Shown here in pieces: positions 6,255 to 58,188 of a stretch of 64,000 nt of DNA; position 1 is the stretch's first letter; each line of letters opens with the position of its first letter. The translations under genes and the position numbers were made by a program. The notes below the pieces were generated by a model, which saw nothing but the letters and a program-made list of their open reading frames with translations, did not search any database and was not told the origin of the DNA. Source of the DNA: Klebsormidium nitens (lineage: Eukaryota; Plantae; Klebsormidiophyceae); assembly GCA_000708835.1 (NCBI GenBank), contig DF237349.1:21216-85215 (forward strand), written 5' to 3'.

Positions 6255-9200
6255 TCACATAACAATCAGGTTCTGCCGTTTGGCGTACGCGATGACCGCG
6301 AAAAAGATGACGAACATCCCGAATATGCTGCTCCCCACCACCCACTTGAACATGGACCCTTTGTGGTAAAGCTTGTTTGGGATGTTCATTCCGAACACGC
6401 CGACCACGACCGTGTAGCAGCCGACTACGAAGGTTGCTGTCGTCAGCATGAGCTGCATCGTCAGCAGGATGTTACGCTGGTTGTCCAGCTCGATGTTGAT
6501 GTAGTCCTCCGTGTCGTCGATGAACTCGTTCAGCTGCACGAGCGAGCGCCACGTGTCAGCCCGTCATTCAAAGTCTTCGATGCAATCAGTCGGGGAGTAA
6601 AGGTTGCAATGACGAGTCCTATTCGCCCCCTGCAACTTTCGAGGGTTCCTCCAAGCAGAGCGGCAGAAGGACGACCGTAGCCTTCGTCCAGAATCCCAAC
6701 AGAAATCATAGGGTGAGGGAGGTCTTACTCTACAAACAGATTGACTCGACATGGCTTGTTTCATATCCCAAGCGCTTCCCCAATCAGCCCTTTAAGAAAT
6801 CGTACAGAAAAGCGACGTAGAAAGCCTGCTTGTTAAGCGAGTAAGTCCGCGCACAGGCAAACACTGCAAATGTGCTCCTTCAAAACCTACGTGATTTCCG
6901 CTCCCAGACGAGAAGAGACTGACCATAAGGAGAGGACGAAGGCAAATCGCGACCACCCTTTTAGGAGAGGCGTCAAACCGCAGAAGACATTTTCAATTGT
7001 CCTCTTTCTAGGTATAAGGCCGCACATTCAACCGGTGGGCACGGAACAACCTTAAACTCAGAACGGGAACGGCGATGTGCTGATGCTTTGAAAGAGACGC
7101 GAGCCTACCGTGGAGAGCTTATTGAGCGAGGTGTCGATCTGTAGAAAGTACGACTCGAGCAGCATCTCCAGCTCCTCCACGTCGAACTTGCCGTCGCTGC
7201 TGTCGCTGTCGCTGTCGCTCTCCATCTGGCTCAGCGCGCCGGACGCGCGCCGGCTGCTGGCCCTGTTGAGCGAAAAAGGCAGGTTAAGTCCCGGTCAACC
7301 CGGTGAAAAAGGCAGGTTAAGTCCCGGTCAACCCGGTGAAAAAGGCAGGTTAAGTCCCGGTCAACCCGGTGAAAAGGGCAGCTTAAGTTTCGGCAATCCG
7401 GAAGAATATCACCCGTGATGTCCAACATGCTCGACGATAGACTGGAGAATACCATCACCCGAAACTTACTTAGGCGTAATTCCCGAACATGGCTGGAATT
7501 TCCGTGAACGAAATCGTTCGTAATAAACAATGTGACGAATCGGTTGCCCGCCTGTCAAGGCACTGGCGGTTTCAAAACCGCTGCAGCTTCCTAGCTGGCT
7601 CAGCGCGCCACACGCACGCCGGATTGAAGGATCGGAAAAAAAGAGACGGATGGAAAGCGAGAATCTGCAACGGCACAACACTGATTTCTGACTTCCGAAG
7701 GTTTCGCGCTCTCCTTCGAACACATGTAGACTGACCCGCTGTCAAATCCCGGCTGGCCCTGCTGCTGTTCACGCTCTCTTCGATCAAACCAGAAGGCAGG
7801 TTCAGATTTGACAAGGTACTAAAGTGTTCGATAGGTTTGAAGGCTGCCAGTGATTGGGCACGTGATAGGTTGGCTGCCTTCCCAAAAACTTCAAAAACCG
7901 GTGACCGAGAACCATCCGTTTTGACTAATTCCGAGAGTCATGCTATAGCAAAGGAAAGCAAAGTACGGAAGCCTGATTGAACACTCGCCCCACCGGCCTA
8001 CCTTTAGATGACAATCTACGAAAGAAAGTTTGATATGATCCTCACCGGAACATGACTACTTCGATATTTTATTGTCCGGCACGACCCTGACTCCCACACG
8101 CAAGATGTTCTCTGGGCGGATTTTAAAGTGACGCCTTCAAATTCGAAAGCAAAACAAGATTTTGCTCTGGATTCTGGGCGGATCTTAAAGTGACGCATTC
8201 AAACTAGAAAGCAAGAAGAAAACTTTGCTCCAGAATGCACCAGGACATGACCATCGGCGAAATCAGCGCCTCCTCGTTTAGCGCAACCGCGAACTCCGCG
8301 CGCAACACCTCCTTCCCGGCGTTCAGAAAGTCCTGCTTTGACAACGAAGCTCCGCACAAAACCTTGATGAATCGCCCGAAACATAAGCACGAGATAAAAG
8401 ATCCTGCTTCAAAAGGATAAGTGAGAACATAACCACCTACGGCGCCTACCGAGACATCGGCGAATTCAACACTTGGTCTTTCGGCGCAATCGCAAGCTCC
8501 GGGCGCGAGCCCTCTTTCCGGGCGCCAGAAAGTTCTCCTTTTGAGCACGAACTAAGCACAGGAAAATTGATAAAACGCTCACCGAGACATGACCATGGGC
8601 GAGTTCAGGATTTCGTCGTCCGGCGCAACCGTGAACCCCGCGCGCGATGCCTCCTTCTGAGCGTTCAGCATCTTGCGCGTCAGGTACATATCGTCCATGT
8701 CGCCGTCGTCGTCCAACAGCTGCTCCAGCTCGTCGCGCACCTGCAAAGAATTCTAAAAACCGGTTGGCCTCTCTGAACACCCGTCTTATTTTCTTTTGAC
8801 ATAAAGAGCTTCATCATGCGATCCGAAATCAGGTACTAGACGGGCTGCAGATTCGTTATCTCCCCATCGTCGTCCAAGAACTGTTTCCAGCTCGCTGCGC
8901 ACCTGCAGAGAGTAAGCCGGAAGTCCGTTTGAACCCCTCTGAAATTGCTCTCGACCCACCACTCCCAAAACTTGGCGGGATCATGTCGCCGTCAAGAATC
9001 ACTTAGCAGCTGCTCCATCTTGTGCACCTGCCAAAAGGGTCTCCTCTTAACACCTGCAAAAAGGGTCTTCTCTCAACCCGTCTTAACCAAAAACCGCTGG
9101 TCTCAGAATTCCCAATGAGGTACTGAGTGGGCTGCAAAGTTTCCCAACAGCTACTGCAGCCCGTCGCACGCCCGCAAGAAGGGACAGAAGCGCCCCTCTC

Positions 9201-11538
9201 GACCTCTCTTAATAAATCTAAAAATAAAATATAAATATAAATCTATCCACCAAAATTGGGTAAGATTCACAAAATCCAAATGAGGTACTCAATGAGCTAC
9301 GAAGCCATCCTGAGGCCGTTGCTGCCCCAGACAGGTCCAATCCATGCTGCTTTTCCAGTGACGGGGAGAACCTGATCATGCTTTTGCGACATAGACACGG
9401 CGGAAACGAAAGCAAGGCCAGTCCAGCTGGGCGCTGGAGGGGCTTGAAGGAGGAAAATCAGAAAGCGGCAGTTAACAGTGTTATCCACGCGACACTGAGA
9501 TATCTACACGCTTGATGCCTGACGTAGAACAAGCCAATAGGGGAACAGAACACAAGAGCGAAACTGTCGTTGTACTGCTGCAGCATCTGCCAGTAAGAAA
9601 CACCAGTCGACGGACTTCGGTCTCTGCAAGCCAGCACAGAAGTCAACCGCTTGCAGACCACCACTTTAAGCAAGGCATTCCTACAGCGATAACTTGCAAT
9701 ACCTGAGCTCTGCACGATGACGTAATGCAAACACCTGAAGAAGACACGTACTTGTTTCGAGGTTGACAGCTAGCCTAAAAATACCAATCGAATCCACGAC
9801 GACATATGCACCGCACCTACCTTCTGCACCCTGGCCGTGAGACGCGTCAGCCGACTCTTGAGCCCTCTGACCCGGTCCAGGTTCATCACCGTCACCTTTG
9901 CCGTGAGCTCGTCCAGGGCCGGATACGCGTCGCCCTCGAGCTCTTGCGTCCGAGCGTCGAGGTAACTACACACCTGCAGATTTGAGGAAGTCGTTCAGGG
10001 ACTACAGATTTGTACGTGGGAGTTTGCGGAGTGCTTGTCTACGGGCTTGAAATGGTTCAAAAAGCACGTTGAGGTAACTACAAACCTGCACATTTGGAGG
10101 GGTACTTCAGTGACTCTCCTTGACGGGGGAATATTGCGAAGTGCTTCTGAACGGGCTTTGAATGCTTCAGACAGCACTGAAATTGGGAGTGTTATTCTTG
10201 CCGTAAGCTCGTCGGGGCCGGGTATGCGTCGCCCTCGAGCTCTTGCATCCGCGCGTCGAAATAAGTACACACCAGTATTTCGGTCAGAACGGGATTACGG
10301 GACTTTTCGGAGTGCTTGTGAATGGGCTTGAGAAGGTTACAGAGAGCACTAGATCTGGGAGTGTAATCTTTGCCGTGAGCTCGTCCAGGGCCGGGTATGC
10401 GTCGCCCTCCAGCTCTTGAGTCCGAGCGTCAAGGAAACTACACACCTGGAGAATGAGGAGAGATTCCACTGACAACGGGAATTGTGCAAGTTTGCGGAAT
10501 GCTTGTGAAGGGGCTTGAGATGGTTCAGAAAGGACTTGATATTGGAGTTAATTTCTTGCGGTGAGCTCGTCCAGGGCCAGGGAATGCGTCGCCCTCGAGC
10601 TCTTGTGTCCGAGCGTCCAGATAACTACACACCTGTGAAGTAGGGGCGTGCATTTGAGTCACGGAGGGTGTCGACGATTTGCAGAGTGCTCGTAAAGTGA
10701 TACAGACAAGACGAGGTTGCTTGAAAGAGGGTCTTCTCTCCCAGCATCCACAGCACCTCAGCTAACACTACCTTTGACAAAAGAAGGAGACAAGGAGAGA
10801 ATGAAAGGAAAAGGAAAAGGCACAAAGGCGTCGATCAGATCAAGCTGACCACTCCAGCCTGCGATGACCAAACAATATCAGAAGACATTTGCCATCATTG
10901 GTACGGATCCTTCGACCAGATCTTTTTGTCAGATCCGCGTGGTCTTACTGTCGACATTGGGATGGCATGATGAACGAACATCTTACATAACGCGGCCTAT
11001 GAAGCAAGAGGAAAAGCTGATAAGCTTTTGGCTGATTGACAACGCCAATGTCTGAACAAACTCAGATCCCCCGGACAGTCTAATAAAATGTACTCACCGC
11101 CTCAAGCGCCACCTCCATCACGCGGAACTCGAACGGCAGCGAATCGTGGTTCTGCATCCCGTTCGCCCGGTCCGGGCTCGCCGCCTCCTCCCTCAGGGGG
11201 CTCGTCGCCGGCAGCGAGATCCGCCTCCTGAGCTCCTCCACAAACGGGATCACCGCCGCGCTGTTTGCATTGAGCAGCAGGACCTCTTCTGCCGTGATGA
11301 TCGCCTTGATGTGCTCCAAGTTCAGCACGATCGCCTTCTCGCGCCCCAGAATGGTCGACGAGTTCGACATCAGCGGCCCGAGGATGCGGAGGTCGCGCGC
11401 GGGGATGGACGCGCGCCGCATGATTGCATATTTGTCCACCTCAAGCACCTCGGTGTTCCCGTAAATGTCGAACCGGAGCCACATGCGGCACCCCGGCTTC
11501 TTCTTCTTCCCGAGCGCGGGGAGGTCTGTGTTCGACAT
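6255..11538 (-). CDS. MRS2: MRS2/CorA-family magnesium transporter; exons 11538-11098, 9973-9821, 8740-8583, 7262-7109, 6533-6255
   Basis: [96 protein letters not shown] and the GMN signature (GVFGMNIP) followed by a final TM helix. All junctions are GT-AG and phase-consistent. The start ATG is the first in frame; an upstream exon cannot be excluded. Confidence 0.95.
7272..7400. repeat. 33-bp tandem repeat (3 perfect copies plus 1 degenerate) abutting the MRS2 exon-4 acceptor
   Basis: Unit gaaaaaggcaggttaagtcccggtcaacccggt at 7272, 7305 and 7338. On the transcribed strand each unit has a CTTAAC branch-point-like motif followed by a pyrimidine run. Confidence 0.95.
8040..8560 (-). repeat. Degenerate intronic copies of the 3' end of MRS2 exon 3 plus flanking ~60-bp tandem units
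   Basis: 8240-8330 (gacatgaccatcggcgaaatcagcgcctcctcgtttagcgcaaccgcgaactccgcgcgcaacacctccttc) parallels exon sequence 8586-8660. A weaker copy lies near 8440-8520, and ctgggcggat..taaagtgacgc is repeated at 8112 and 8173. Confidence 0.8.
8820..9310 (-). repeat. Degenerate intronic copies of the MRS2 exon-3 acceptor and exon start (~150-170-bp period)
   Basis: cag|gtgcgcagcgagctggaaac near 8903 and cag|gtgcacaagatggagcagctg near 9030 versus the true cag|gtgcgcgacgagctggagcagctg. The spacer motif aat(c/g)aggtact recurs near 8828, 9115 and 9279. Confidence 0.8.
10060..10640 (-). repeat. Three near-complete (plus one short) intronic copies of the MRS2 exon-2 acceptor and first ~26 codons
   Basis: Copies at about 10200-10275, 10368-10447 and 10560-10634 of gtgtgtagttacctcgacgctcggacgcaagagctcgagggcgacgcgtatccggccctggacgagctcacggcaaag. 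The 10445 copy keeps cag|GTG and reads [26 protein letters not shown]. Confidence 0.95.
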
Positions 11539-12687
11539 GTTGGCGGCCGTGAGCGCGATGTGGGGGGGCGGCTGCGCCGCCGGCCCCACCCCCTTGAACA
11601 GCGCCCTGAACGTCGTGCGCCGTGTTTCACCGCTCTGGGGGGGTGAACCCTGCTCTCCCGGCCTGACTTTGCTGGCCCCCTGGTGCGACGGTCTGGCTGC
11701 TGCCAGACGTGAACATCGCCCACAGGCGCCTCAGCTCGGCCCTTCCACTTGTTCGGAACTCCAATATCAAACAATCCAAGCACTCCCTTTGTGGGGCACT
11801 CCTGCTTGATTAGTGTGACAATAAGTTTGATTGAGCACGTCAGCTGCTTCTCATTGAATTTACGATTCAAACCCTGCTGTACTGAGGCTTGAGCTGTCAG
11901 CTGGCAGAACAAACGAGTGACCAATTGCAAAAGGGGACTTTGCGGCACTCACTGAAGAGTGGCCCATCCCCAGCAATAGCTTACATCTTGGTGGTGTCCA
12001 AGTGCAACAGACCCGTTGGATTTCTCTAGTGCGTTTCTAGAGGTTCAGGCATGCTCGCTACAAACTTGATTGGTGGCACTCAGACCGCTGCTTGCCTGTG
12101 TATACCAGTCTACCCCGCCACCTTGCCGCTACTCAGTTGGGAGCCGCAAGGTCATTTCAAAAGTTCAGAGAGCGCAACGTCTGGAAACCCCTGACCGCCG
12201 AAAGAAACTCCCCTTCCTTCCTTACGTGCAACCACTGCAGAAAGGACTTTGCTTTCAATCCCAACTATTTTCTGCTGGACGTGAAGAATGATATTCTTCA
12301 ACACCTCAGCTACAGGTGCCTGAAAGAGGGCCTGAAAAATCATGAGAATGCAGCAAACAGAAACTGGTGCTCACTGCTCCACAGCTCAGACTCGGAGGCG
12401 CCAGGCAGATTGGATCTGGAATTGCAGCTGATCTGAACTTTGAAGACTGTTGGCAGTGTTGAAAAAGTGGCAATCAACATGAACCGGCATATGTATGCAA
12501 GCCGCTCCAAGATCTGATTGGTTAGCACATTGTTGAGTTCCTGGGACGTTGAGGACTTTTCTGAACTTCGATTGGATTTAGAGATCAGAAGTTTCAGCAA
12601 AGTTGCAAGAAAGTTGTAATTCAAGCTGAAACTAGAGAGATCGAAGCAGCTAAGGCAATTTTGTAAGGGTAAGGTCATTTTGTAGTG

Positions 12688-12977
12688 GACCCCCTATGTT
12701 CAGTCCAGAGCCCCTCGAGACCCGAACGGCCAGGCCCCCCCACCTCCCGCTGTCCTCCACTCAAGGATAAGCCGAGCCCCCCCCCCCTCCGGCTGTATGA
12801 ATATGTGTATTTTGCGGCTATTTTGCCCCTGAAAACAGCATTTTCAGACCGATATTACAACAATTTCCGAGCCTGCGGCTCGACCATGGCGGAAACCCCG
12901 AGCCCCCCCTCCCGCTGCCCTTAGGATTTTAAACCCCCAACCCCCCACCCTCTGAACTGAACATACCGTAGGGGGTC
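12688..12977. mobile_element. Possible ~290-bp MITE relic between divergent MRS2 and LSM3
   Basis: Left gaccccctatgttcagtccagag (12688-12710) is the reverse complement of right ctctgaactgaacata[ccgta]gggggtc (12950-12977), with one mismatch and a 5-bp insert. Internal direct repeats ccgagccccccc(c)tcc. No clear TSD. Confidence 0.5.
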
Positions 12978-13180
12978 AGCTTCAACATGACCTTACCCTA
13001 AATATTACAGACACAAGAGAAAAGCGGGCCAGCCTCTGCACACACAGCCATTCCTGGTCCTGAGCCTGAGGCGAGAGCAACTGCCCAGGGGCCAGGGCGC
13101 ATTTTCCAGCAATTGATCTGCAACTTGTAAGGCTTCCAGCAAATCCTCTGCTTGTTGTCCCACACAACCTACAGCGGGTC

Positions 13181-25585: not shown

Positions 25586-28500
25586 CTAGACGTAGTATTG
25601 CGGCTTCATGAAAGCCGGACGGTCCAGCTCCGCATCCTCCTCGTCCGTGCCCCATTCGTACACGGGCTCCTCGACGTCCGCGCGCGAGCGCGAGCGCGAA
25701 AACGTCCGCCCTTCCGCCGCCTTCTTCTTCAAGCTCTGGAGGCTCGCTTTCACGACCGGAGCGACGCGGATTCCGCCGGCCCTCCGCCCATCGCCGTCGA
25801 AAAACTCGCCGGACTCCGTGTTCAGCCGCGATCCGCTGACCGCCATTCGGCGCGCGTGTGGCCGTTCCGGCGGATCCGCCCGGCCGAACGCCCCCGGGGA
25901 TGACATGTTGCTGACGTTGCTTATGGTCCGCTCGCGGCGCGGGGGTCTGTGTGCACTAAGGTCGGCCGACTGTGTGCTAAGCTTCCGCGTCCGCCTTTGA
26001 CCCTCTCGGGGGGATCCCCCGGCCAACGGGCTCCCCCGGGGGGATCCCTCGAGAAGCGACACCAACCGGGGCGCTTTTTCTCTTGTACTGCCCGGAGATC
26101 CTTTCGAAGGACGTACCCCCGCACGGCCCTCAAAGTTGGACTGGTACCGTCTCGGGCTGCCCCTGTGACTTCCGCCGGGCTCACTCCTCTCCGGAATCCG
26201 CTCATGATGTTGGAGGGATCCCTCGACAAGCGACACCATCCGGGGTGCTCCTACTCTATGACTGCCCCGCGAGGATGAATCGCTCTCTTCGTAGGTCGTC
26301 TGGTACCGTCTTGGGCTGCCTCGGTGAGCTATCCGTTCGTGATCTTCCCGGGGGGATCCCCCAACCAACGGGCTTCCCCGGGGGGACCCCTCGACCAGCG
26401 AGACCAAATGGGGGGCTTTCTCTATTAAAGACGGAGCTCCGTTCGACGGGCTGCGAGAGTGCATCCCCGCACGGCCTTCGTAGCTGGTCTGGTACCGTCT
26501 TGCGTTGCCGCGGTGCAATGCTCCAGGATCGCTCCTTGTTAAAGATGCTTGGTTTGAAAGCTTTGAGCCCCGGAGTGATTCCGGCGACCTGTCATACCTC
26601 TGGTCCGACTTCGAGTGCGCCTCCCGATTCTGGATGATCATCTGTTCCTCTTCATAGCTCCTTTCATCACCTTCGAAGTCCCTTTCCGGCGGAGCTCCAC
26701 CGGAATACCCCTGTTGTTCTCCGAGCGACGACACGCGCGTCTTGCGCCGCGGCGCGCCCGCGGCGCGCGCACGCGCATCCGTCCAGCTCACCGACCGCCC
26801 GGCCGGCCGCAGCCCTTCCGTTTCCGCGTCGTAGGTTCCGCTGCTCCGGCGTCGAAGCGCCGGAGCCTGCCGCGCCGACCTGTGCGATTCGACGCTGTTC
26901 CTCGCTTGCGGCAGCTCACTTTCGCCGTATTCCCCTCCGTCCATTTCGGCCTCCGGCAGCAGGTCTCTTCCGGCGGAATCCTCCGCTTCAGTGTCGGACG
27001 GAGTCCGCTCCTCTAGCTCGTCCGAAACCTCTTCCGCGCGCGTGCTCCCCTTCCGACTTCCGCTCTTCCGGCTCCCTTTCCGGTGGAGGCTCCTCGATGT
27101 CCGCCGCTCCTCCGAGTCTGCGGCGTCCGCCTTTCTTCCAAACAGTCCGCGCAATTTCTTCATCAAGATCGCACGCTGTGTGTAGATCGCTTTTGCGATA
27201 CTGCATAGGAAAGAGCATAGAAGGTCATTCATAGGCTTTTGAGCTTTGATGCGTTGACAGGTTTCCGAACGTTCATTCACAGAAATCTCATACCCAAATC
27301 GTCCGGCCCAAACTTCGGCGTGGCTTGCTAATGCAATGAAGTGGGAAGAGGTAGTGACACCTTTGCTAAGATGAGAGAGAGAAAAAGAAAGAGATCCCGA
27401 CGGGAGGGTCGTCATTACAAGCCCACAAGTCCACCAAAATCCACACAGCGAGGATTGGTATCGATAGAGAGCAGCTCTGAGAATTGTAGCGCATCGATTT
27501 TAGCCACGATCAGTCGCTTCTAACAATGAAACTCTGTCCTTCATTCCGCTCCGGTCGATTGTACCGCTGGTGCAAAAGCGGAACCGGAACACAGAGCAAC
27601 TCGCAGGGGTCGTGAAGCTCGAAATGAACAAGCAAGAACCATTGAATCCCTCTATACTTCGTTCCGTTCCGCTCGGTTGCACCGGTGGTGCACGAGCAGC
27701 ATTTAAATGGTCAGCAGCTGCGCAAAGAGGAGCAGCAAACAACAGGAGAAGACCCTTTAGACAGGATTCTGTTGGAGCTCCGTTCCGTCCGTTCCATTTT
27801 GTTCTGCTCATATGCGCACGAGCTGCACCATAACGGACAGTAGCGGCGCGGAAAGGAGCAGCAGAGAGTTCTAAAACAACAAGGTACCAAAGCTTCATTC
27901 CGTTCCGTTCCGCTCGATTTGAACATGTTGCACGAGCTGCGCCGGAACGGGCAGCAGCTACGTGGAGCCGAACATCACATGTCATGAGAAACAAGACAAC
28001 AAGAGCGTATAGAACAAGAAAGTGCCAAACGCCTCGTCCGTTCCGGTCGTTCCGTTCCGCTCACTTGTACCACTGGTGCACGAGCTGCACCAGAACGGAC
28101 AGCAGCTGCGCGCGAGAGCAGGACTACAAACGACGAAGTAAAACCTCAGAACAACAAACGCAGAATCTGCGTTCCGTTCCCTTTTTCAAAGTTCCGTTCC
28201 GCTCACTTGTACCACTGGTGCACGAGCTGCACCAGAACGGACAGCAGCTGCGCGGAGAGGAGCAGCGACTGGATGGCGCTGTCGCTGAGGCGCGCCTGCG
28301 CCCAGCCGCTCGCGGTGCGCCAGAGAACTAGGATGGCGAGCAAAAAGCTGACGGTCTCGCAGATGAGCACGATCTCCTCAATGGCCTGGATGCTCCGGTC
28401 GAGGTACGGCTTGAAGAACATGAGGTATGAGAGCTGGAAGAGAGAATAAACGAACAGGATAACCACCTGCGAGAAAAGGATTTAGCTTTTTATGTTCTGA

Positions 28501-40500: not shown

Positions 40501-43500
40501 GCAAACCGAGAGGACATCGTCGTACGACGCTGATCCGAATTGTGAGCAACTGTAATAGTGAAGGTAGGAATACGATTCCTTTCAAATCTTTAAGCTTCAG
40601 TGCCCCGAAAACCCAAAACTTCTAGAACGTTCCGTTCTGAACGGCAAAGTTCATTTCTATGGCACATGACAATACCACACAGATGATAAACATAACGTTC
40701 GCGGGACCCATCATTGAAGTGCGAAGCGATTTTCAGGAGAACGCGGGGAGAACGCTCCCTTACTTGGTTCGTCGGCACGATTGTAAATGCGTGGCTCGTC
40801 GTCTTCCCCGGCGATCCAAGCCCCGGATACTTCGCCCCTTGCGCCGGCGTGCATGCTTGCACCGGCAACGAGTCCAGCTGACACATGAACGTGCAACGTG
40901 CGCAGCTGACGTCATAATCGTCCGTCGCCGTGAACGTGAAACTCGCGGCGTCGGACGTCGTCCTCGCCGCGGGCGATCCGGTGATGGTAACGGTGGGGCC
41001 CGTCAGCTGGACGAGCCACGACGCGGTGGTAACGGTCTTCAAGTTGCCGTCGGGGTCCGTCACGGTGATCGACAGGTTGTGCGCGCCTTGCGCGAGCGCG
41101 GGGAAGATGGCCGCGCCCGGCGACTGCGCGCACGGCTGCGCGGCGCCGCCGTCGAGCGCGCACGCGAACGCGCACGCCGCGCAGCGCGCGACGATGCCCC
41201 CGATCGCGCCTTGGAAGCGGAAGCTCGCGATTGGAGAATTCGACAGCGTCGCCGGCTGTTGGAGAATCGTGACCGTTGGGGCGCTCAGATCGACGGTCCA
41301 GAAGAGGGATACGATCGGGCCGACGTTCCAGGCCGCGTCTGTGGCTCGGGCGTGAAACGAGTGTAACCCGGGGGTTAACCCGGTAACCGTGTAGTTCGTT
41401 TTCGTTGCCGTGCAGTCAGCGAAAGGCGCGGAATCCAACGCGCAGGCTAAAGTAGTCGGGAGGGGGTCGCTGCTGTTGAAGGAGATCACCGCGGTTTGGA
41501 GGCTGGTTATGGAGTGGTTAGCGGGGCCGCCGGAGAAGGTGACACTGGGGGCGTCCGTGTGGAGGAGCCACGTGACCTGCGAAACGGAAGCGGAAACGTA
41601 AGCAAGATCTCGTGAGAAGGAATTTCACACCGACATTGTGATTGAGAAGAGATTTTCTCGATCGGTCGAGAACGCTTCGAACGAGACTGGTCGATTCGAG
41701 ACGGATAAATGCTCCGTGACGGCTAAGGGGATTCTGAAACAGGAAAGGCGACAAAGCGTAAAAAAGATTTCGTTCGTCACTGTGGACGGGACTTGACGGC
41801 TGCTGATGTGACTGAGGAAAATTTAAGGTTTTGATCGCGAGCAGGGGACCCAAAGTCTTCACGAAGGGAAGATTCGCCCGTTCAGAAACAGTAGGCAGGC
41901 GGTGTCTTGGCTTTGCTAATAAAAGGGACGCACGACATGCTTTCTAACTCCCCTTTGTTCGGCCACGAATCACAGTAAGGGGGACGGTTGTTGCGAATGG
42001 GAAAGCCTGCTGCCGACGTTGACGATATAATTGCAGATAGACCAAAAGCAATAACAAGGATTGCAAAGCGGCGGGTGACTCCTTCCTCTCGGACAATGGC
42101 TCTTCGAAAGACCTACTCATCAAAGTGGGTTTTCCGTCCCACACGTCAGACTCTGGGGGTGCCATGCTTACTGAGAAATGTCGGGTCAAGGAAACGCGGA
42201 ACTCATTTTATGCTAGCCGTAAGACCCATTTTAAGGGTTGTGTCCTTTCACATCTTACTTGAAAGGACCTGTGGATTACAAAGTCTGGTGCTTTCAGTCT
42301 GAGTCTCAGATCCATGAAACCAAAAACTTCGAGCCCCTCGGACTGCTCTAGAAAAATAATCCCATTCTGCAAGCGTCGCATTTGTGCACAATTAATTCCA
42401 ATTCGCTCATGGCCCCACAAGTTTTATGCCCAACAGCTCCTACTAAACTGCATGAGCTATCGATGTCGAACTTCGGTGTAAGCTGATATCTCGGCTTCCA
42501 CACTGAGTTCTGACTACGCAGAACGGTTGAGCGGTCCCCGCAGAATCGAGCCCTACGAACTTCGCATAGACTTTCCATGCAGGTTGCCTACGCTGTTCGC
42601 TTACTTCGGCTGCCGTCCCATGACGCCCGCTTTCCCCCACATTGTCATTCTCAGTCCCGTCATTTTCTGCCACAGTACTTAAAGTACCTGGAAATCTCTA
42701 GATGAACGAAACAACACGAGGCCTCATGTCGCGCACGAGCGATTGTCACACGTCCGCCACTGCGCCACAGACGCACAATTTATTCGCATTCCGGGTCCAG
42801 CCCAACAGTTCGGTCACTCGCTGCCACAATACCTCAGCACCCAAGGAGCATACATACCGAACCAATCCGCGACCCGATGGAGCGCATAAGCTATCCACTT
42901 ACCTCCGCCAACATCCTTTTCACGCACGCTTTCCCTCGGTTCGGATCCTCCCCCAAACTCCGGCCACGCTTTCGAGTCCCAGACACCCAGGGAGTTAAGT
43001 AATAAGCTATCAAAAGCTCTCGCCTCACCTCCGCCACCGTGCCGTTCACGCACGCACTCCGCAGTTCGGCTCCTGCCTCGCATTGCACTCATTCGCGATC
43101 CCAGTACCATATAAGCACCCCAGAATCCCCAGAAGCTCAAATACGAACCGATATGCGACCCGATGTCACTCATAAGCTATTGCCTCACCTCGGCCACCGT
43201 TCCGTTCACGCACGCGTTCCCGCAGTTCGGCTCCTGCCCCCACAGATCAAGCACGTACGGCCCCTCTTCTAACGCGGGCGACAGCGCCTTGCTGCTGACG
43301 TAAGTCCCGTTCGGCCCTTGCGTCGGCGCCTCTTTTAACACGTCACAATGCTGGTCGACCCCGTTCAGCGTGCAGAATGCGGCGCACGAGGGGCAGTCGT
43401 TTCCGGCGCCGTCGATCGCGTACCACGAGATCGACCAACCGGAGGAGGTGTTTGTGTAACGGGGGGGGTATGTGACGAGGACCATTTGCACTCGCCCAGT

Positions 43501-46018: not shown

Positions 46019-46137
46019 ATTGCTCAGCTTGTCTTCTAACTTCCATGGCAGCCTAACTCTAAGTGCTGCAGGCGGTTCACCTTATTTTTTCTAGTTTCGA
46101 GCACTCGCCTCCTCTGACTTTGGTTTCTCTGGTTGCA

Positions 46138-49100
46138 ATGCCGTCCGATGCTGCCAAGAAGAAGGCTGCTCAAAAGCGGATAGCAGCCGCCACTAAACGG
46201 GTGCCAGGGGGCAAGAAAGATGCTGACGCTCCTGCCGGCGAAGAGCTTTCAGTACCTGAAAAGAATGACGGAGTGAGCTCTGAGACTCATGACTCAGCAC
46301 AGGGAAGTGCATCTGCGGGGCTGTCTGGAGGAGGGAAAGTTGAGAAGGTTAGAGGTGGGGGAGGAAGCAATGCCGCAGAGTGTAATGTGACGCGCATCGT
46401 GTTTCCAACGACTTTAAGCGCAAGGCAAAGGGCGCTTGTCCATGGTGAGCGACAAGCTCTGGAGAACGTCATTTCTTTTGCTTGATTCTACAAAGTGACC
46501 TGTGCCACCCATGCATAATAAAGTGAACCCACTACGGCATTCCGGTCAGGTCAACTGCCTAGCACTGGTGGTTCTTTGATACTCTGGTTCCCTATGGTCT
46601 GCTGAAAGAAGTCGCTAAAGGTGCCAGAGTATCCTTTATTCGATATTGATCAGTGTATCAATCAAGCTAAGGCTTCGGAGATCAAATTCAAGCGATGATC
46701 TCTACGATTGTTTACAAATCTTCTCCTCGCTACTTGATGATTTGTTGAAGATCTGGTGCTAATGCCGTTACCACCATGGGACGTGCATATTTCGGTACCA
46801 CAAATGTGCTAAAGTTGTTTCTTCTATCAGCGATGCCTCAAAAAACTTCCAGAAATAGGGGAGCCGAGAGTAATCCGGGCATCACTAAACAAGGGTAGTA
46901 GAATCAACAACCAGTGACCAAGTAGTCAAACCATGCTTCTTAGAAAATAAGCAACTTTGAGTTAGTGGTGTATATGTTGCATTGCCACACCACTGTCACT
47001 TCTTCGTTTGAAGTATCTTCTCTCCTTTTTTAATCCATTTGACTAAGTAGTCCGGAGAGTGGTACCAAGCAATCTTCCTATCGTTGGTAAGCCGGACTCC
47101 CTGAATAGGCCTACAGTGACCACAACCAGCCTTTCTCTTCTGATGAGCAGACTCAAATAGATGGTGACTGAACTGGCAACCCATCAAAACATGATCGTCG
47201 AATCTCTTCCCGACATGAGAAGCTGGCAAGTGCCAACAAAGTGCCGGATCCATCCCTTCCACAGAGGTGGTTGTATGGGAGACCAATTGTCTTGAGGAGT
47301 GCAACAATGCACTCAGCTCCCCAGCAGATTTTACAGGGGGCTAATGTTCAAAAAAGAAGTACACCTCTAACCAACACCTAACTCAACCCCTTAACCGAGA
47401 GTCTCCATTTGCAGAGGTGGCAGAGGAGGCGGGGTGGAACCACGCCAGCGCAGGCCCCACGGTAGACACGCGCAGACTCGCGCTCTGGCAGAATGCAGAG
47501 GGCGACCACCTCGACGTCCCCGAAACAGGGCCTTCGTTCGACGATGCCGACATCGCTGACGTTCTTGAACGCGTTCTTAGGATTTCAGTCCGGGACAAGT
47601 TTCTCGATGGGGGTGGTGCTGGGAAGAAGAGCGGAGAGAAGGGGGCGTCGGCGAAAGGAGGGGTGACGTCAGCAGGGAGGGGTGTGACGTCAGCCGGAAG
47701 AGGGATGAGATCAGCGGGGACCGGAATTGAAGCCACGGGGAAGACGGTGTCGTTGGAGGGGTTCGTGAGCGCTATGATGCCGTTGCTGGAGCTTGAGAAG
47801 GTGGGTTACATTCTTAATCCAACAGGTTGATTCAGCTTGTAGGTCAGAACCGCAATGGAACCTCGGTGGTTCGAAATTCTTGGTTAAAAGAGCCAGAGCT
47901 TCGGTCTGCGATAAGTTGGTTGGCCTGAGGCACTGCTGAAGTTTGAGAAGGCAGGTTAAAGTCCCCAACCGGGACTTGGTGAAGAAAACCAGTGACTGAG
48001 TGAAATACGGAAACTTTTCTTGTCTGGTTCTGTAGACATGGCAATGCAGCTGCTATCCCATCTGTGACCGGGTTGGGTTAAGCTTTTATCTGACAGAAGT
48101 GACCTAGCTTCGAAACCTGGTCTTTCGATCCGTTTTTGTTGAACCAATTGGAGAAAAGCCTTCGCTCCGCGAAATCCAATAATACCGCATTTGACCCTAT
48201 AAGCGAGCATTCTCTCTCATGAAGGCTAAGAGACCTCTTTTGTCAGATTTGCATGTCCTCTAAACAACAAAAAAACTCACCTCCATGCAACCTAGTCTTT
48301 CAGACACTCTTAATGTATTCCCAGACACCTCTGCAACACTATCGACGTTCCTTCTGTTCCTAGACGCTGCAGGAAGCCGAAGTCCGCTGCATCTACCGTG
48401 ACCAGCACCATGCTCAAACGTGAGATTGCCCAAGCCGAGCACTTTCGACGCTTTGCAATATCTCTCAAACACCTCTTGAACGCGATCGAAAACGTTGCTC
48501 CTACTGCCGAGGTCGCGGCATCCAACGTAACTAAACCCACGCTGAATCTGGGACCGCTCAGAAATGCGCTTCTAACCCCTGAGCGCTTTCGAACGCTCCT
48601 GAATACTCCTCGGACACTTTTTGGACGCATTTGGGGATTTCTGTTTTTATCAGCTCACTGCAGGACGCTGAGGTCGCCGCATCCACTGTGACCAACACCA
48701 CTCTCAAATACGAAACCGCCCATAAGCGTGGCCGCGCGCTTCACCATCTGAGCTCCTTCGGATACTGTCTGATAATTCTTCAACGAAGTTGAACATTCGT
48801 CACGTTTCTGCCCGTCAGAGGAAGCGGAGGTTGCGGCATCTACCGAAACCAACACCACGCTGAAATCCGAGACCGCCCAAAAACGCGGCCGCGCGTTTGG
48901 TCATTTCCGTTGTTATCACTCGATGCAGGAAGCCGAAGTTGCCGCATCTACCGGAACCAACACCACTCTGAAATCCGAGACCGCCCAAAAGCGCGGGCGC
49001 GCACTTCATTACCTGACACTTCATACACTTTTGGACACATTTCTGATACGTTCNNNNNNNNNNNNNNNNNNNNNNNNNNNNNNNNNNNNNNNNNNNNNNN

Positions 49101-52100
49101 NNNNNNNNNNNNNNNNNNNNNNNNNNNNNNNNNNNNNNNNNNNNNNNNNNNNNNNNNNNNNNNNNNNNNNNNNNNNNNNNNNNNNNNNNNNNNNNNNNNN
49201 NNNNNNNNNNNNNNNNNNNNNNNNNNNNNNNNNNNNNNNNNNNNNNNNNNNNNNNNNNNNNNNNNNNNNNNNNNNNNAACTTCCGGCGTGCACGGAAGCC
49301 GAAGTCGCAGCGTCCACCGAGACCAACACTACGCTCAAACCCGAGACCGCCCAAAAGCGCGGCCGCGCGCTTCTCAACCTCAAGTGCACTGACGCCCAGA
49401 GCGGTCTTCTCGGAAAAACGCTCCTGGTCCTCGAACCGAACCGGGGGGATCTATTTCCGCCCCATAAGTTTACCCCCCACGACGTGGTTGCGCTAAAGTT
49501 GAACAAAGCAGATGGGTCGGCGCCGGCACTGGGTCAGGGGGTGGTTTACCAGGTTAAGGATAACGCGATCACGGTCGCGTTTGAGGACGTTCCGGAAGAC
49601 GGGCTGGATTCGCCGCTGCGGATCGAGAAGCTGACAAATGAGGTGGGTCCGAACTTGGCTGGAGCTTTGACTGGTGATCCAGTATATCTGGAGTGACTGC
49701 TGAGCTTTGACTCTGTCAGTTTTGAACACTTCAACAACTCCCGTCTAGGGTCTAGTAGGAAGGTGTTCGGGTATCTGAAACCACAAGGCAACGAAGGCTT
49801 CGATCGCGAAGTCAGAAAAGGTTCCTCTGAGGATTGATTGACGAATTTGCTGGGTTTCTTCAGCTTCAAGAACTGGAGCGACGAGAAAAGATCCGTCCCA
49901 AGCCAATGCTCTACGTGTCGCCCAATGGTCTCAGGTACCGTACTGAGGGCTTGCTCCGAAGCGCTAACCTGCCAGTCGGCAAACCCTACAGTCGGTCACC
50001 ATTGCTGGTCCACGTCACCTTTTCCACTCATCAAACTTCCAAAGTCCTGCTCAGACTTTCAAAAATCCTATAGCTCTGCTGTGGCTCAGCGTTCATTTCC
50101 CCGCCTGAGTTCCTTTGAAAATTGACTGGAGCAACGAGTTCGTCTTTGCACGGTGCACTCATTCCGCGAGCTGCGGAGCCCATGTAACGCTTGGGGTCTG
50201 TTGCCAGGTGACGTTTCGTCGCCTGAAAGACACCCTGATCGAGCTCAGCAAGGGCCCAAAGGGACCGGCCGTCGATCTAGTTCCGGTTCTGTTCGGCGAG
50301 CGGGCGCCGCGCTTTGCTAAGAAGCCGCTCCCGTTCACGCCGATCAACGTGAACCTTGACCACTCTCAGGTGAGGTGCCAAGCTCAATTAAGGGTCCTGC
50401 TTGCGAAAAGTGACTGGCTGGAATGCTTCAAAGGCTTGAAGCATTGTCGTTTCTCGAAAGCTGAGAACGGCTGCGTTTCGTGAGGGTTTGCCTCATTACG
50501 AATCAATACTTGGACTGCCAAGGGGGGGCTGTTTTCAGCATGTTGCGCTAGGTTTGGAGGAGCGAAGCTTTTGGGCAGAAACGCTGTAAAAAGGCCGATA
50601 ACAAGTGTGGGATACAATAAAGAGGGTTATGGCCCCGCATTTACGATTTCACGAGCCGGGTACAACGTCTAGGATATCATCTTAGCTAACCAGAGAAGCC
50701 TGCATTGCGAAAAGAGAAGATTATTCTTGCCCAGTACGTAACGCCGTACTCTGCGTGCAGAGGGAGGCCGTTTCGCGCGCGCTCGGGGCGGAGGACTTTC
50801 TGCTGTTGCACGGGCCGCCGGGCACGGGGAAAACGACAGCCGTCATCGAGGTCAGACAATCCTTATTATTTGGAGTTTGAAATCTTTGCACTCGAGATTG
50901 TCAAACATTTCGAAGAACCAGCAGAAGGGCTGAGATGACGGGATCGGATTCGACCCTTCCTTGCTAGCTCAACAGTCAGGGGACCCGATAGGAAAAGAAA
51001 TGGAATCTGAAGAGATGACCTTTTAAGCACCCTCAATCAAAGGCTGAGAGGAACGAGCGCTCTGCTCTCCGTTGATTGACCAAGTTGCGATGACGTCCGC
51101 TGCTCAGCCACTCGCTGACATCATCCTTTTGTGTCACTTGACGTCATTGCCTATGCCCTGCACAAAGCGGGTTACCATTCATGCAACTTCTGACGTCAGC
51201 GGCTGTAAAATGGACGCTTATGCCATACTTTTCCAAGGAGCAGAAACTAGGCTTTTAGTTTGTCATGGTCATCAATCTCCTGAAGCAGAGACAATGACGT
51301 TATCGAGCAGGGACAAACGACGTCATCAGAAGGAGAGAAAGCCGTAACTAACATCAGCGAAAGAGCGCCATGAGAGTCTGGTGCGCACGGCGTCAGATGT
51401 GTGGTGCAACCCGTCTTATTATGCTGACGTCATCTCCTCCGTTCTGCAGTTGATTTTGCAGGAAGTGAAGAAGGGCCGGAAGATCCTGGCGTGCGCGGCT
51501 TCCAATATCGCGGTGGATAACATGGTGGAGCGGTTGGCAAAGCACAAGTGAGCAGGTGATACATGGTGCCGACGCGCTGGTTTTGCGCTTTGTGTTTGCA
51601 AATATAACCATCGTCCTTCGAAAATGCAAACGAAAGTTTGTCTCATATCTTGTCTCTGGGATCAAGTCGAACAGTATATGATAACATGAGGCGCTTTGAA
51701 TCATGTGGCCGGTTCTTGCGATGGTAGACTTTGAAGATCATACTCAAATCGGTTTGGAGTGTACACGAGAGCTCCGATTCCGAGGTCTATCTGGGGATAT
51801 AGTTGCTGGGCAGCCTAGAAAGAGGGTAGAAGCCGCTTCTAGAAAGTTTGTTTTTAATCCGAATACACACAGCCCGGCAAGTAAACGTGGACTTGGATGA
51901 CCGGATTAGCGCACGCCGTGAAGATTTTTGTTCTGCTGATCGTGATAGGGCAGGATGCAAGAGGAGCTTCCGTCATGACCCAAAGATCATGGAGTTGTAG
52001 ATCAATTTTGGAACGTTTCAAAAATTCCTGAGGTCACCCAATTCCTAGCACTCAGGGTCGGGCTGGAGCGGAATTGCAAAACGTCGATGCTTCAAGCTGT

Positions 52101-55100
52101 CGAACCTCAAATCTTTCGAGTGTGCAAAGCGTGAAATCCTACACATTGCCTCAAAATCTCCGGATGTCAGAGTTTCACTCAAGACTTCAAACTCCAAAAG
52201 CAAGCTATTTTTGTGTACTTTAACTCAGGGTTAAGCTGTTGCGGTCAGCTCACTCGCAAGTAACCTTGGAAACCCTAAATCCCTAGCCCTTAACCCTGCA
52301 GGGTTAAACTGGTGGGGGGAGGCTACCCCGCCCTGCTGCTGCCCCGATTTTCGGACAGCACTTTGGACGGGCTCGTCATCCAAGACGGACAAGATCTCCC
52401 TCGCGGATAACCTGAAAATCCTGAAACTCTCGCCCCTAACCTTGCAGGGTTAAGCTGGTGCGGTTAGGCCACCCCGCACGGTTGCTGCCCCAGGTTCTGG
52501 ACAGCGCTTTGGACGCCCTCGTGATGCGCACGGACAACAGCTCGCTCGCGAACGACGTCCGAAAGGAAATGAAGCAGATTGGGAACAAGCTGCTGAAAAC
52601 CAAGGATAGGTGAGCGCTAGCAACTTTCCTGATTGTTGAATTTTCTCATCGAAGTGGTCAGAGAAACCGTTCTCTCGGACAACGGCGGTCCGAGCTGGGT
52701 CGGACGGAGGCGCTTACGGGCATGATACCAGTGTGCTTCTTCGTATGGTCTTGATTGTGCTGCGTTATCCTCGATCATCTGCAGTCTGTAGTCCTGTGAG
52801 AAGCAATATTGGACCCTCGAATTCTTGGCTTCGACTTTGGAAAAACAGGGCAGTCGTCGGTCACGCCGCTAGTCACTAGAGCTGGATCACTTTTGGTCGA
52901 TAGTTGAGACAAAGCAGTGAACGGCGCTGCTTTTCCCCAGAAAGACTCTTATCATGCGGCAAGCAATCCTCCGGATAGATTATATTGAGAACCCTCCAAG
53001 ACCGTTTTTCTCTAACTGTCAAGTCAAAGCTTGCGAGTTGCTAAAGCTGCTGAGTCCAGAAGCCCCGCTCGCTTCCAGGCGCGAGAAAGGCGACCTCCGG
53101 CGCGAGCTCAAGAAGCTGGCCAAGGAGGAGAAGCAACGTCAGCAGCAGGCCGTGAATGACGTCATCAAGGACTCCACCGTCATCCTGACGACGCTGACGG
53201 GCGCGCTGAGCTTCCAGCTCAAAGGAACGGACTTCGATCTAGTTGTGCTGGACGAGGCGGCGCAGGCGCTTGAGTGCGCGTGCTGGATCCCCATTCTCAA
53301 GGTGGGTTAGTGTTTGTGAAACCTAGGGTTTGAAGTTTTAAACCGGGTTAAAGCGCGACATTGCCAAGGTTTCAAACCGCGAAAGTGTAGGATTTTAGGT
53401 TCCAGTCTCAAAGTGGATGAAAGGTGCAGAATCAAAGGCTTACTAGAGTTCCAATCCTCAAGGCGGGGCGACAGTTGATGACCTTCTTTCTGTATTGTCA
53501 GTTACCTTCTCCTCATGAATGTTACGTGGTTGGCGCTTCGGTGAAGAAGTTGAGGCTGTATATTCATTTATAAGGCATGTTAATGTGCTCTTAGCTGACC
53601 CTCTTGTTTGCGTTCCCGAAAGCCCCTGAGTGGTGGGCGGCCTAGCTTTGAGACCCTTTTCTTTCTTGAGACTTGGAGGAACCTGCCCGATCGACTCACG
53701 AGGAAGAGAAACCCAATTGACATTGTAAACAAGCGAAGAAAGCAGAAAGAAGAGAAGGGGTTTTTCTGAAACCTTCTGTATCTCGTATTGAAATTCTCGA
53801 AAGTTTCTGAAATCCCGGCCTTTCTGCAGGGCCGGCGTTGCATTCTCGCGGGCGACCACCTCCAGCTGCCGCCCACTGTGCAGAGCGCCGAGGCCGAGAA
53901 AAAGGGGTTAGGCACAACCCTTTTTGAGCGGTTAACTAGGCTGTACGGTGATGACGTTACGGCGCTGCTAACGGTGCAGTACCGGATGAACGAAGACGTC
54001 ATGCGGTGGTCGTCAGAGGAGCTTTACGGAGGAAAGGTGCGTGCCGCCTTAACCAGAGCTTAACCCTGGACAGTTACCTACAGCTCTTTGCGTCAAACCT
54101 GCCATCGTGTTTCTAACTCTCCGATCATGGTCCCCAATCTTGAACCGTTCGATCGACGACAAGGATGGCACCGGACGGCCCAAGATGAGAAACCAGGCTT
54201 AGAAAGCGTTAAACCCGATGGCAAGTTTCCGCAAACAGCTGTAAAAGCCGCTTGATTTATGATAAATCAAATATCTCAGCAGAGTTCGTAGTCCTGAATG
54301 CTAGATTCTGAAGCTGCGAACTATTGACGGCGCTGGATGACTCAGCCCCAAAAGTTTGAGGCCTTTCGGATCGTTCTGTGGTGTCCAAAAAGCTCTGGAA
54401 GAACCGGAGCGGATTGTCTGCGTGTGCTGGGTATGTGTCGCAAGGTGACGTCCTCAGATGTGGAGTCCGGGTGGTCTGAGCTGCCGATGTGTCAGGGATT
54501 GACGCACGTCTCCTGCTCCCCAGATCACGGCCCACGAGAGCGTTGCGTCGCACGGGCTCTGCGACGTGGAGGGAGTGACGTCATCGCCAGCGACGGACCC
54601 GGTCCTCATCATGATTGACACTGCGGGGTGAGTCCACTTTCATTTTCTTGCGTTATGTTTACGTAATAAGAACTGGCAACCGTCTCGCGCAATTGAATTT
54701 GGCACTCAGTGAAGTATGTGCTCATACCAGCTCCAAGGTGGTCTTCCGACGACTCACGTTATGGGCATTCAGAACCCGTCCGTCGGACATTTGACCTCTT
54801 TAGACATACAAGTTGCAGTTGACGCTCGAAGCTGGGCGTTCTTCCCTCACGAGGTTAAGAAGGCTCTATCAAAGGAAACAAAAACAGGTCACGAAACTTA
54901 ACCCGGATTTTTGTCCTTGCCTGTCCGTACAGCACCAATCAACTAAGCAGAAGCCGATTATGTTAGCTATTCCATCCACCATCCCCCTGCGTCCCTTACT
55001 TTAGTTCGGCCAAGTGATCTGCCATGAGGGATTCTAATCCTCAAAGTTTCGACAATCACTGTGAACAGACTGTAAACCGTCGGAAGAAACATCTTACAAC

Positions 55101-56997: not shown

Positions 56998-58188
56998 CGA
57001 ATGGTCACTGTTTTCGGAGGAGAGAAGAGAGTACCTGAGCCTGTGTGCTCTGGATGTACTAGCTTCTGCAAAGAAGACTGGCTTCATTGGCGTCCATCTA
57101 CGTGTCTCCAGACAGCTCAGTGACGTTGGTGTTCGAAGGAGGTACGATATCAAGGAGTCCACCAAGGAGTTCAATTGATTGAAAGCGTTGCGCCCGCTCG
57201 GTACAGCCGCCGGATGGTCGATTTTGGGTCAAGTCTCTTCTTGATGTGTCTCAAGGCAAAGGCGCTCCTGCGGCGGCCCAGCCAGATTGCTTTGAAAAGG
57301 GACAAAGCTAAGTGTTATCGAAGTGACCCGGAACGTGCACTGACGGTATCATGAAATGCGCGCGCTTGCGTTAATTGGACTCCGAATCATTGCATGCCAG
57401 AAGTCGCGTGCCTGGCCAATTGCCTCAACATTTTCATACTTATTGAATGACGTACTGCAGGTCGATCCGGCTCGGGACCGATCGACGGTACACGTACGTT
57501 CAATTAATGAAGAACGGGCGGGCCTGCCTCAGTGCCCAGGCTCGGCAAGAAACCGTATACCGTCCAAGTAATAGTACCGATGACGCCGCGGTCGTGATCG
57601 AAATTCCACTAGCTATAGTTGTGTTACAATGGAAAGCTCGATCAGGCATACATTACGCTATATATAATTCCCGTGCCGAATGAAGATGCATGACGTTGAC
57701 GGCGCTACTTAATTCATTGAATTTGACGCCCTTTGCTGGCACATGTGCATAATTCAAACACGTATCGGCTCGATTGTGTAAGAAATGAACGACTTATGTG
57801 ACTAAATCCATGTGGAAGTCTGTCAGAAGGCCAGGCACGTAATTAAGTGGGATCATATGCGAGCCTGCAGCCACTCCGAATCTCAAGCTCTTATACTCTA
57901 GCTCTTCGCAAGCTCATAACTACCTGAACAAACCACGCAATCAACATTCGGAACACGTTCTATTGCCGCTTTATCTGAGCAAGACAACACTCTGCTTTTG
58001 ACTGGGCCCTCCAGCTTGATTGCAATTCGAGTAGCCTAGAGAAGATCACGATGACGAACGGCATACGATGCCAGACGCCCTTGCAAATCAAGCCTGGTGG
58101 ACGGAAGCAAGATGGATTAACGGTTTTAAGGCTTTCGATGGACTTTGAATGCTCTAGATGCAACTCAATTGGACGATCTAATGACGCC

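Follow-up and report, generated by a model that had tools for sequence, protein, structure and literature searches.

A 64,000-nucleotide stretch of contig DF237349.1 from Klebsormidium nitens (assembly GCA_000708835.1, positions 21,216 to 85,215 of the forward strand; the whole of it is called the window here, and its first letter is position 1) contains introns in which the edge of the adjoining exon is repeated in tandem together with its splice site. Such arrays stand at 12 exon boundaries of an MRS2 gene, a long transmembrane (TM) or giant gene and a helicase gene. They are real, recurrent and short-lived on an evolutionary scale, in this clade at least and in a zygnematophyte. We consider it probable that the copies are harmless leftovers of short duplications, which preserve older silent-site states of the exon, and not hidden coding exons.

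The arrays were found by reading the sequence on the gene strand and aligning the exon edges against the flanking introns. An earlier note on this DNA had counted at least 12 boundaries with one to five tandem copies in three genes, and the alignments give the same picture, with 12 boundaries carrying between one and five copies each. On the minus strand, MRS2 has copies at exon starts 8740 and 9973 and at exon end 8583, and the TM/giant gene has them at exon ends 28208, 30086, 32275 and 43189 and at exon starts 28466, 30282 and 32966. On the plus strand, the helicase has them at exon starts 49295 and 52448. At all 12 boundaries the copies are head-to-tail direct repeats in which the unit comprises the splice site, adjoining exon sequence and intron sequence, and the units within one array have their exon-to-intron junction in common. 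The spacing between units (n = 32) has a median of 152 base pairs (bp) and an interquartile range of 138–175 bp, close to the 110–190 bp of the earlier note, and the majority of spacings are not multiples of three. The individual arrays, with lengths in nucleotides (nt) and copies labelled c1, c2 and so on, are as follows.

8238–8668, minus strand: array B_dn, the end of MRS2 exon 8583–8740 with its GT donor and two downstream copies at 8441–8529 and 8238–8326.
8690–9036, minus strand: array B_up, MRS2 exon start 8740 with upstream copies at 8858–8911 and, older, at about 8985–9036, each preceded by cag.
9896–10640, minus strand: array C, the first 78 nt of MRS2 exon 9851–9973 with three upstream units and a truncated unit.
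27551–28262, minus strand: array E, the end of exon 28208–28466 with its donor and five downstream copies, GT being lost in all but the nearest.
28413–28936, minus strand: array F, exon start 28466 with two upstream copies at 28554–28610 and 28882–28936, each with a pyrimidine tract and cag.
29550–30160, minus strand: array G, the last 75 nt of exon 30086–30282 with its donor and three downstream copies, of which c2 and c3 contain an in-frame TAA.
30232–30653, minus strand: array H, exon start 30282 with two upstream units of 144 bp.
32124–32319, minus strand: array J, exon end 32275 with its donor and one downstream copy.
32860–33849, minus strand: array K, exon start 32966 with four upstream copies containing stops and frameshifts, the AG being lost in two.
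42903–43250, minus strand: array L, giant-gene exon end 43189 with its donor and two downstream copies.
48373–49384, plus strand: array M, the start of helicase exon 49295–49644 with upstream copies at 48929, 48821, 48664, 48506 and 48373.
52302–52530, plus strand: array N, helicase exon start 52448 with one upstream copy that has eight replacements in 27 codons.

The polarity of the arrays never reverses: as had been noticed before, they always extend into the intron, with no exception among the 12 boundaries. Homologues align to the exon-contiguous unit only. As no unit but this terminal one is continuous with the remainder of the exon, all others are intronic, and the polarity rule follows from this. 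Acceptor-side copies consist of a CTAAC-like motif that resembles a branch point, a pyrimidine run, AG and the first 15–35 codons of the exon, and each acceptor-side unit is therefore a complete 3′ splice module. Donor-side copies consist of the last codons and GT. Acceptor-side copies are followed by no conserved donor GT and donor-side copies are preceded by no conserved AG. At the exon starts of arrays C, F, K and B_up the AG is directly followed by GT, which is not the case at M, H and N.

Genomic contigs of relatives were reached through protein searches with single exons, and the following loci were used.

L004 and L005: contigs from one JGI metagenome, syntenic with the helicase and giant-gene region of the window, with exon identity of 82–88%.
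L002 and L003: relatives with about 70% amino-acid identity.
L023, L025 and L026: Logan assemblies with exon nucleotide identity of about 76–83%.
L024: a Logan assembly with 95% amino-acid identity in MRS2 exon 1.

Locus L001 matches the 3′ part of a helicase exon only and is uninformative, and a scan of one set of metagenome contigs gave only distant relatives with at most 72% identity. The 7048-amino-acid protein P0001, which had 62 matches in the representative search, was discarded: it is a satellite in translation, and its match is spurious.

Silent and replacement differences between exon and copy were counted by the method of Nei and Gojobori, and the orthologous exons of the relatives served as outgroups to assign changes to the exon or the copy lineage. 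In several arrays a strong periodicity of 3 is seen in the mismatches between units. The ratio of silent to replacement differences is 5:1 and 6:1 in array C, 10:2 in M and 7.5:2.5 and 9.5:2.5 in G, and in the best copies (C, F, G, J and c1–c3 of M) the corresponding per-site ratio of replacement to silent differences (pN/pS) is 0.05–0.2. The silent excess reported in the earlier note therefore holds for the best copies of C, M and G and does not extend to all arrays: pN/pS is 0.4–0.55 in K and ranges from 0.5 to above 1 in B_dn, E, H, L and N. The values for B_dn (0.5–0.7) are neutral-like, and in H (about 0.4–1) the intron and exon parts have diverged equally. In array J all seven differences are at third positions, one of them creating a TAA stop.

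Of the polarised changes, those on the functional exon lineage fall 13:2:41 on the three codon positions (41 of 56 at the third), whereas those on the intronic copy lineage fall 112:88:90, which is not different from uniform; within array E, too, copy-lineage changes are uniform over codon positions. Nearly all of the differences that could not be assigned are third-position differences, and the sites concerned are fast ones, variable among the orthologues as well. The extra units thus evolve as non-coding DNA, with array M and the Closterium copies described below as exceptions. The same holds between L004 and L005, where orthologous intronic copies differ by 0.11–0.22 and the differences fall 2:2:3 on the codon positions, without periodicity; between these two loci the divergence is 0.24 in introns, 0.18 at third positions of exons and 0.009 at exon positions 1 and 2.

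Some copies retain ancestral codons that the neighbouring exon has lost. In array C these are GCA and TAC (codons 16 and 17), in a copy of L004 they are AAC, TGC and GAG, in array M the copies keep ACC at codon 12 as the orthologues do, and in B_up the copies keep GAT where the resident exon now has GAC. Codons 1 and 5 of array M possibly record stepwise states (GAC and GCG). One of the two readings offered in the earlier note, that serial duplication across splice junctions leaves snapshots of an exon evolving at silent sites, is supported by these codons and by the polarised counts. The premise of the earlier note that neutral decay should give mostly replacements overlooked two points: half of each exon–copy comparison lies on the constrained exon lineage, and the best-preserved copies are a selected subset. 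With this half constrained, the share of third positions can reach about 0.47 without any selection on the copies. The share over all window arrays is 0.51.

We propose that the lineage would produce short tandem duplications of about 110–190 bp at a high rate. A duplication spanning a junction would do no harm as long as splicing keeps to the unit that directly adjoins the remainder of the exon: in acceptor-side arrays this would be the last unit, in donor-side arrays the first. The surplus units, each a splice module with an exon edge, would remain in the intron and lengthen it, and further units would be added by repeated unequal exchange. Each intronic unit would then be a snapshot of the exon edge at its creation or last conversion, decaying neutrally from that point, while the functional exon would continue to change almost solely at silent sites. 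Neutral decay of the copies combined with silent-only change of the exon enriches exon–copy differences at third codon positions.

Gene conversion also occurs occasionally, as in array E. The nearest copy of this array (28049–28112) is identical to 28191–28254 over 64 nt, a stretch that takes in the end of the exon, its donor and 16 intronic nt, while the flanks have diverged; it is a tract of very recent conversion or duplication. The intron at this array begins with runs of the pentamer GGAACGGAACG.

The state of the copies agrees with decay. About half of them contain 1 nt indels or in-frame stops, and AG or GT has been lost in eight of 31. Frameshifts are found in c1 and c3 of C, c1 of F, c2 of K and c4 and c5 of M, and stops in c2 and c3 of G, in the copy of J and in c1 and c3 of K. 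Both the frame and the splice dinucleotides are intact in c1–c3 of M, c2 of C, c1 of G, c2 of F and three Closterium copies.

In array C the exon parts of the units lie at 10198–10272, 10368–10445 and 10556–10632, with the truncated unit near 10064–10085. In L024, where the intron is single-copy, its final ∼100 nt are the homologue of the unit tail, and the unit therefore consists of about 100 nt of the 3′ end of the intron and 78 nt of exon. That the tails are a decayed remainder of the exon was ruled out, as L024 shows them to be the ancestral 3′ end of the intron. In several introns of arrays K and N (for example at 33836 and 52448), the CTAAC-like motif is embedded in ccctaaccc and lies 8–20 nt before the AG. 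Similar motifs are present in L023, and the embedded motif looks like the branch-point consensus of the lineage.

Array M contains an assembly gap. The run of N at 49054–49277 is flanked by the tail of intronic copy c1 on one side and by the final 17 nt of the intron on the other, and is crossed by no reading frame. Both of its flanks are in register with the repeat unit and align to the intron end of L004. As the flanks match the same part of the unit, the gap hides a whole number of units (from zero to about two); at zero length, the spacing between copy and exon is 142 nt, which is typical of the arrays. In 49278–49296 the exon-contiguous unit reads gcacg where the copies and L004/L005 read gcag or acag, and the AG acceptor is thus absent from this unit, 17 nt from the gap. 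The reading gcacg may be a sequencing error at the gap edge or a damaged resident acceptor.

The relatives have such arrays too, mostly at different boundaries. L004 and L005 have donor-side copies in common on the helicase exon that bears the acceptor-side array M in the window, and a further donor-side copy that they share lies on a second helicase exon. The orthologue of the array L boundary bears an array in L004. L023 has a donor-side copy at the boundary of E and an acceptor-side array at that of F; the latter has a different unit (with ∼145 nt of exon) and is therefore of independent origin. A copy is also found at the B_up boundary in L024, and is probably shared with the window. Array C is missing in L024 and L025 (the intron is 430 nt long in L024 versus 1114 nt in the window), array M is missing in L004, L005 and L003, and other arrays are found in relatives only. 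No arrays were seen in L002 and L003. Gain and loss between relatives is thus rapid. The comparison with orthologous introns that the earlier note had suggested thus shows arrays of this kind in independently assembled relatives, some of them at orthologous boundaries.

In Closterium sp. NIES-68 (GCA_027943385.1) six of the 22 exon boundaries of the helicase gene bear copies, among them the exon start of array M, and the annotated helicase protein maps exactly to the exon-contiguous units. Boundaries that recur as sites of arrays include L023 136–586, L004 10273–10739 together with L005 7013–7459, and 4603–4894 of the Closterium locus L027. On the helicase ‘EAEV’ exon the array lies on the acceptor side in the window and in Closterium, and on the donor side in L004/L005. 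Recurrence at equal boundaries in separate lineages suggests either hot-spot boundaries or a very high overall rate.

Some further features of these helicase genes were observed. Intron 5 of the Closterium gene is mostly filled by a 2.1 kb satellite with an 8 bp period (L027 5326–7427), and repeats with periods of 37–120 bp are present in other introns of this gene and upstream of it. L002 and L003 have an extra intron after ‘...LKCSDVQ’ (L003 846–950), where the window, L004 and L005 have a single exon (49295–49644 in the window). The helicase model of Spirogloea muscicola (P0005) contains at residues ∼165–200 the stretch ‘LLDLEK VLLDLRK...’ ahead of the conserved ‘DAEL...’ exon, which looks like a donor-side exon-edge copy that has been read into the gene model.

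Several observations weigh against neutral snapshots as the whole explanation. In array M, 18 variable-column events are at third positions versus four at others (P = 0.0009 against 0.47). Over codons 1–14 of this array about eight of the 14 third positions differ between any two units, while otherwise only codon 9 differs, and the handful of replacements is concentrated in codons 9 and 16, both of them invariant among orthologues. Exon–copy pairs of Closterium differ 15:14:48 by codon position (48 of 77 at the third), again above ∼0.47. In array C the divergence between copies is 0.04–0.08 at positions 1 and 2 versus 0.22–0.30 in their own intron tails, a factor of 3–6 less. The heterogeneity among arrays is modest but real (chi-square P = 0.01). 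The proposal also leans on splice sites that we infer to be in use. Finally, all 12 of the ∼150 bp arrays (units of 100–200 bp) touch a junction, which uniformly placed duplications do not predict, and introns give purely intronic arrays at least equal room. This association points to a mutational mechanism linked to junctions or to a bias in retention.

Some other sources of the third-position excess were set aside, on the strength of rate arguments and not of computed results. CpG or base-composition bias does not fit, as G and C at positions 1 and 2 hardly vary, the first-position G of CpG sites is unchanged and polarised copy-lineage changes are uniform. Gene conversion by the resident exon does occur, as in copy 1 of array E, but does not explain the excess in array M, as by a simple rate argument the per-site ratio of third to other positions cannot exceed ∼1.75. 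Selection on the copies through a ‘conversion load’ is too weak, because third-position divergence of 0.2–0.4 implies conversion rates near the mutation rate. What remains for the excess in M and Closterium is that the units were born from diverged alleles, or that there is true constraint on a few copies.

The first of these would involve exchange between alleles or homeologues that have diverged, by unequal crossing-over or ectopic conversion, in a very diverse, hybrid or polyploid population, with neutral decay afterwards. A new intronic unit would then derive from a functional allele other than the resident exon; from the outset its divergence would be mostly silent and its intron part would differ. 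Such an origin would account for the excess in M and Closterium, for a third-position divergence of about 0.2–0.4 whatever the divergence at positions 1 and 2 (0.02–0.3), and for the intron parts of M, F and K, which can barely be aligned while their exon parts align. L004 and L005 are collinear helicase loci from one metagenome sample with the divergence given above, and the third-position states of the M units form a mosaic and not a tree. However, the M copies are no nearer to L004 or L005 than the resident exon is, the differences at about eight of 14 third positions in codons 1–14 go beyond plausible within-species diversity, and window-specific amino acids are common to the copies. Birth of some copies from diverged alleles seems unlikely to us.

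The second is that a subset of the copies is functional and under selection at the amino-acid level, as alternative 3′ or 5′ splice modules, mini-exons or recursive splice sites. The candidates are a few copies in helicase array M, at the same exon start in Closterium and perhaps in C and G, which would be selected as used alternative, back-up or regulatory exon starts. That one helicase exon start bears an array in the window and in Closterium alike fits this, as do the copies with intact frames and splice dinucleotides listed above and pN/pS values of 0.05–0.3 even between copies in C, F, G and M. The same arrays, however, hold frameshifts and stops, and they are not kept between close relatives. 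Spacings that are mostly not multiples of three, the uniform copy-lineage changes and the aperiodic orthologous copies of L004/L005 all argue against coding use, and the peptides would be near-identical, so that no diversity would be gained. We consider selection on these few copies improbable, and the coding or recursive use proposed in the other reading of the earlier note is not supported, with about half of the copies disabled and the arrays turning over.

Two known systems bear on this second possibility. Clusters of mutually exclusive exons (Dscam-type) arise by tandem exon duplication and likewise contain tandem exon copies with their own splice sites and diverged introns, some pairs having low dN/dS (the rate ratio of replacement to silent change). 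The window copies differ in being partial, with one splice site each, often disabled, of nearly the same peptide and not conserved in relatives. A cluster of mutually exclusive or alternative exons was rejected both because no copy holds an acceptor as well as a donor, and on conservation, C being missing in L024/L025 and M in L004/L005. Recursive splice sites (ratchet points) are found in long introns of Drosophila and vertebrates, and the intronic AG followed directly by GT in four arrays (C, F, K and B_up) has their shape. The window introns are short (0.4–1.5 kb), the AG–GT motif is a copy of the exon start (a Val GTG codon) and does not occur in three acceptor-side arrays (the exon starts of M, H and N lack an initial GT), and conservation in the window spans 50–100 nt of exon, beyond the site alone.

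An origin in assembly, in which variant fragments from a heterozygous or mixed sample were stacked during scaffolding or gap closing, is scarcely credible: the gap within array M, the aberrant acceptor beside it and a unit size near short-read length would fit, but each unit has its own diverged version of the same exon-to-intron junction, units are 10–35% diverged with inherited junctions, such arrays are also present in assemblies made independently (JGI metagenome contigs, Logan contigs and the NCBI Closterium genome), and orthologous copies are common to L004 and L005 and probably to the window and L024.

An introner or other transposable element was likewise rejected. Self-BLAST of the window, Tandem Repeats Finder and a repeat finder gave results in agreement. 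In the self-BLAST there are 40 direct local high-scoring segment pairs, every one with an offset below 700 bp, and none is dispersed; a more sensitive self-search gave 65 direct pairs, 63 of them local and two distant and weak. With local repeats only and units derived from the adjoining exon, the arrays are not a mobile-element family.

The window has a G+C content of about 51% and GT–AG introns and is eukaryotic. Gene identities were checked by Pfam, and the genes and one further repeat are as follows.

About 6.2–11.7 kb, minus strand: MRS2/CorA gene, Pfam-checked.
Within the window: LSM3 gene, without arrays.
Within the window: gene with a Fer4_13 (ferredoxin) domain, without arrays.
Within the window: SINA gene, without arrays.
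27.5–34 kb and 38.7–44 kb, minus strand: the long TM/giant gene or genes, with transmembrane exons in the first interval and exons weakly matching the immunoglobulin-like domains Big_13/Big_3_3 in the second.
46–57 kb, plus strand: SMUBP-2/IGHMBP2-type helicase gene.
25998–26536, minus strand: in-frame coding tandem repeat inside a 637-codon open reading frame (25589–27499), with offsets that are all multiples of three.

The nearest named homologues of the helicase are from zygnematophytes and land plants. In the window self-comparison there are no local repeats at 12–25 kb and 57–64 kb, which hold LSM3, the Fer4 gene and SINA, and the absence of arrays from the genes called LSM3, SINAT and the thylakoid gene in the earlier note is thereby upheld. 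The tandem repeat at 25998–26536, with units of 53–63 codons, is a coding repeat and not an intronic array, given its offsets and its position inside the reading frame. This frame has no Pfam match and is probably the last exon of the TM/giant gene; an orthologue is present in L023 downstream of the TM exon.

Shorter local repeats are present at 4247–4409, 8111–8230 and 31100–31234 (offsets of 108, 62 and 51 bp). At 7272–7388, directly upstream of an MRS2 exon, a 33 bp unit is repeated 3.5 times. Read on the gene strand, it contains a CTTAAC-like motif and a pyrimidine run and resembles repeated branch-point/polypyrimidine modules minus the exon part.

A well-established path to intron sliding and gain is a single tandem duplication that crosses a splice junction (PMC2891723, PMC3265369, PMC4974935), as described by the Rogers model and exemplified in Drosophila (PMC2891723), in a vertebrate experimental case (PMC3265369) and in the potato RdRp gene (PMC4974935). 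The likeness is close: there too a direct duplicate contains a splice site and an exon edge, one site is used, the rest is intronic and the transcript stays intact. In each known case one event has created or shifted one intron, whereas the window has arrays of two to six units at many existing boundaries of the same genes, with a ∼150 bp unit, in several lineages, and existing introns are lengthened rather than new introns formed. In Chlamydomonas and Volvox, intronic tandem repeats are reported to be enriched near intron–exon junctions (PMC3887541), and intronic satellites of Chlamydomonas to cause genic assembly gaps (bioRxiv 10.1101/2022.06.16.496473). These cases resemble the window in concerning green algae with tandem repeats in introns near junctions and assembly gaps within them. 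The passages of these surveys matched by our terms make no mention of units with an exon edge and splice site, a polarity rule or a codon-position pattern. Chlamydomonas and Volvox are chlorophytes, whereas the window groups with streptophyte-type sequences. Full-text literature searches gave related items only, and no account of multi-unit arrays of splice-site-bearing exon edges, their polarity, the ∼150 bp unit or their use as a record of ancestral codons.

If the copies are indeed neutral leftovers, the arrays would represent a largely undescribed form of intron growth, by repeated units of ∼150 bp anchored at splice junctions. The leftovers would be a built-in fossil record of earlier codon states of the neighbouring exon, and the copies could help to determine the direction of silent substitutions, to place duplications in time and to quantify gene conversion and neutral decay within genes. 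As rows of intact-looking decoy splice sites, the arrays may also mislead gene prediction, as they perhaps have in the Spirogloea model, and they cause assembly gaps. If instead some copies are functional, the arrays would add a functional layer to the control of splicing in this algal lineage and would be more than debris.

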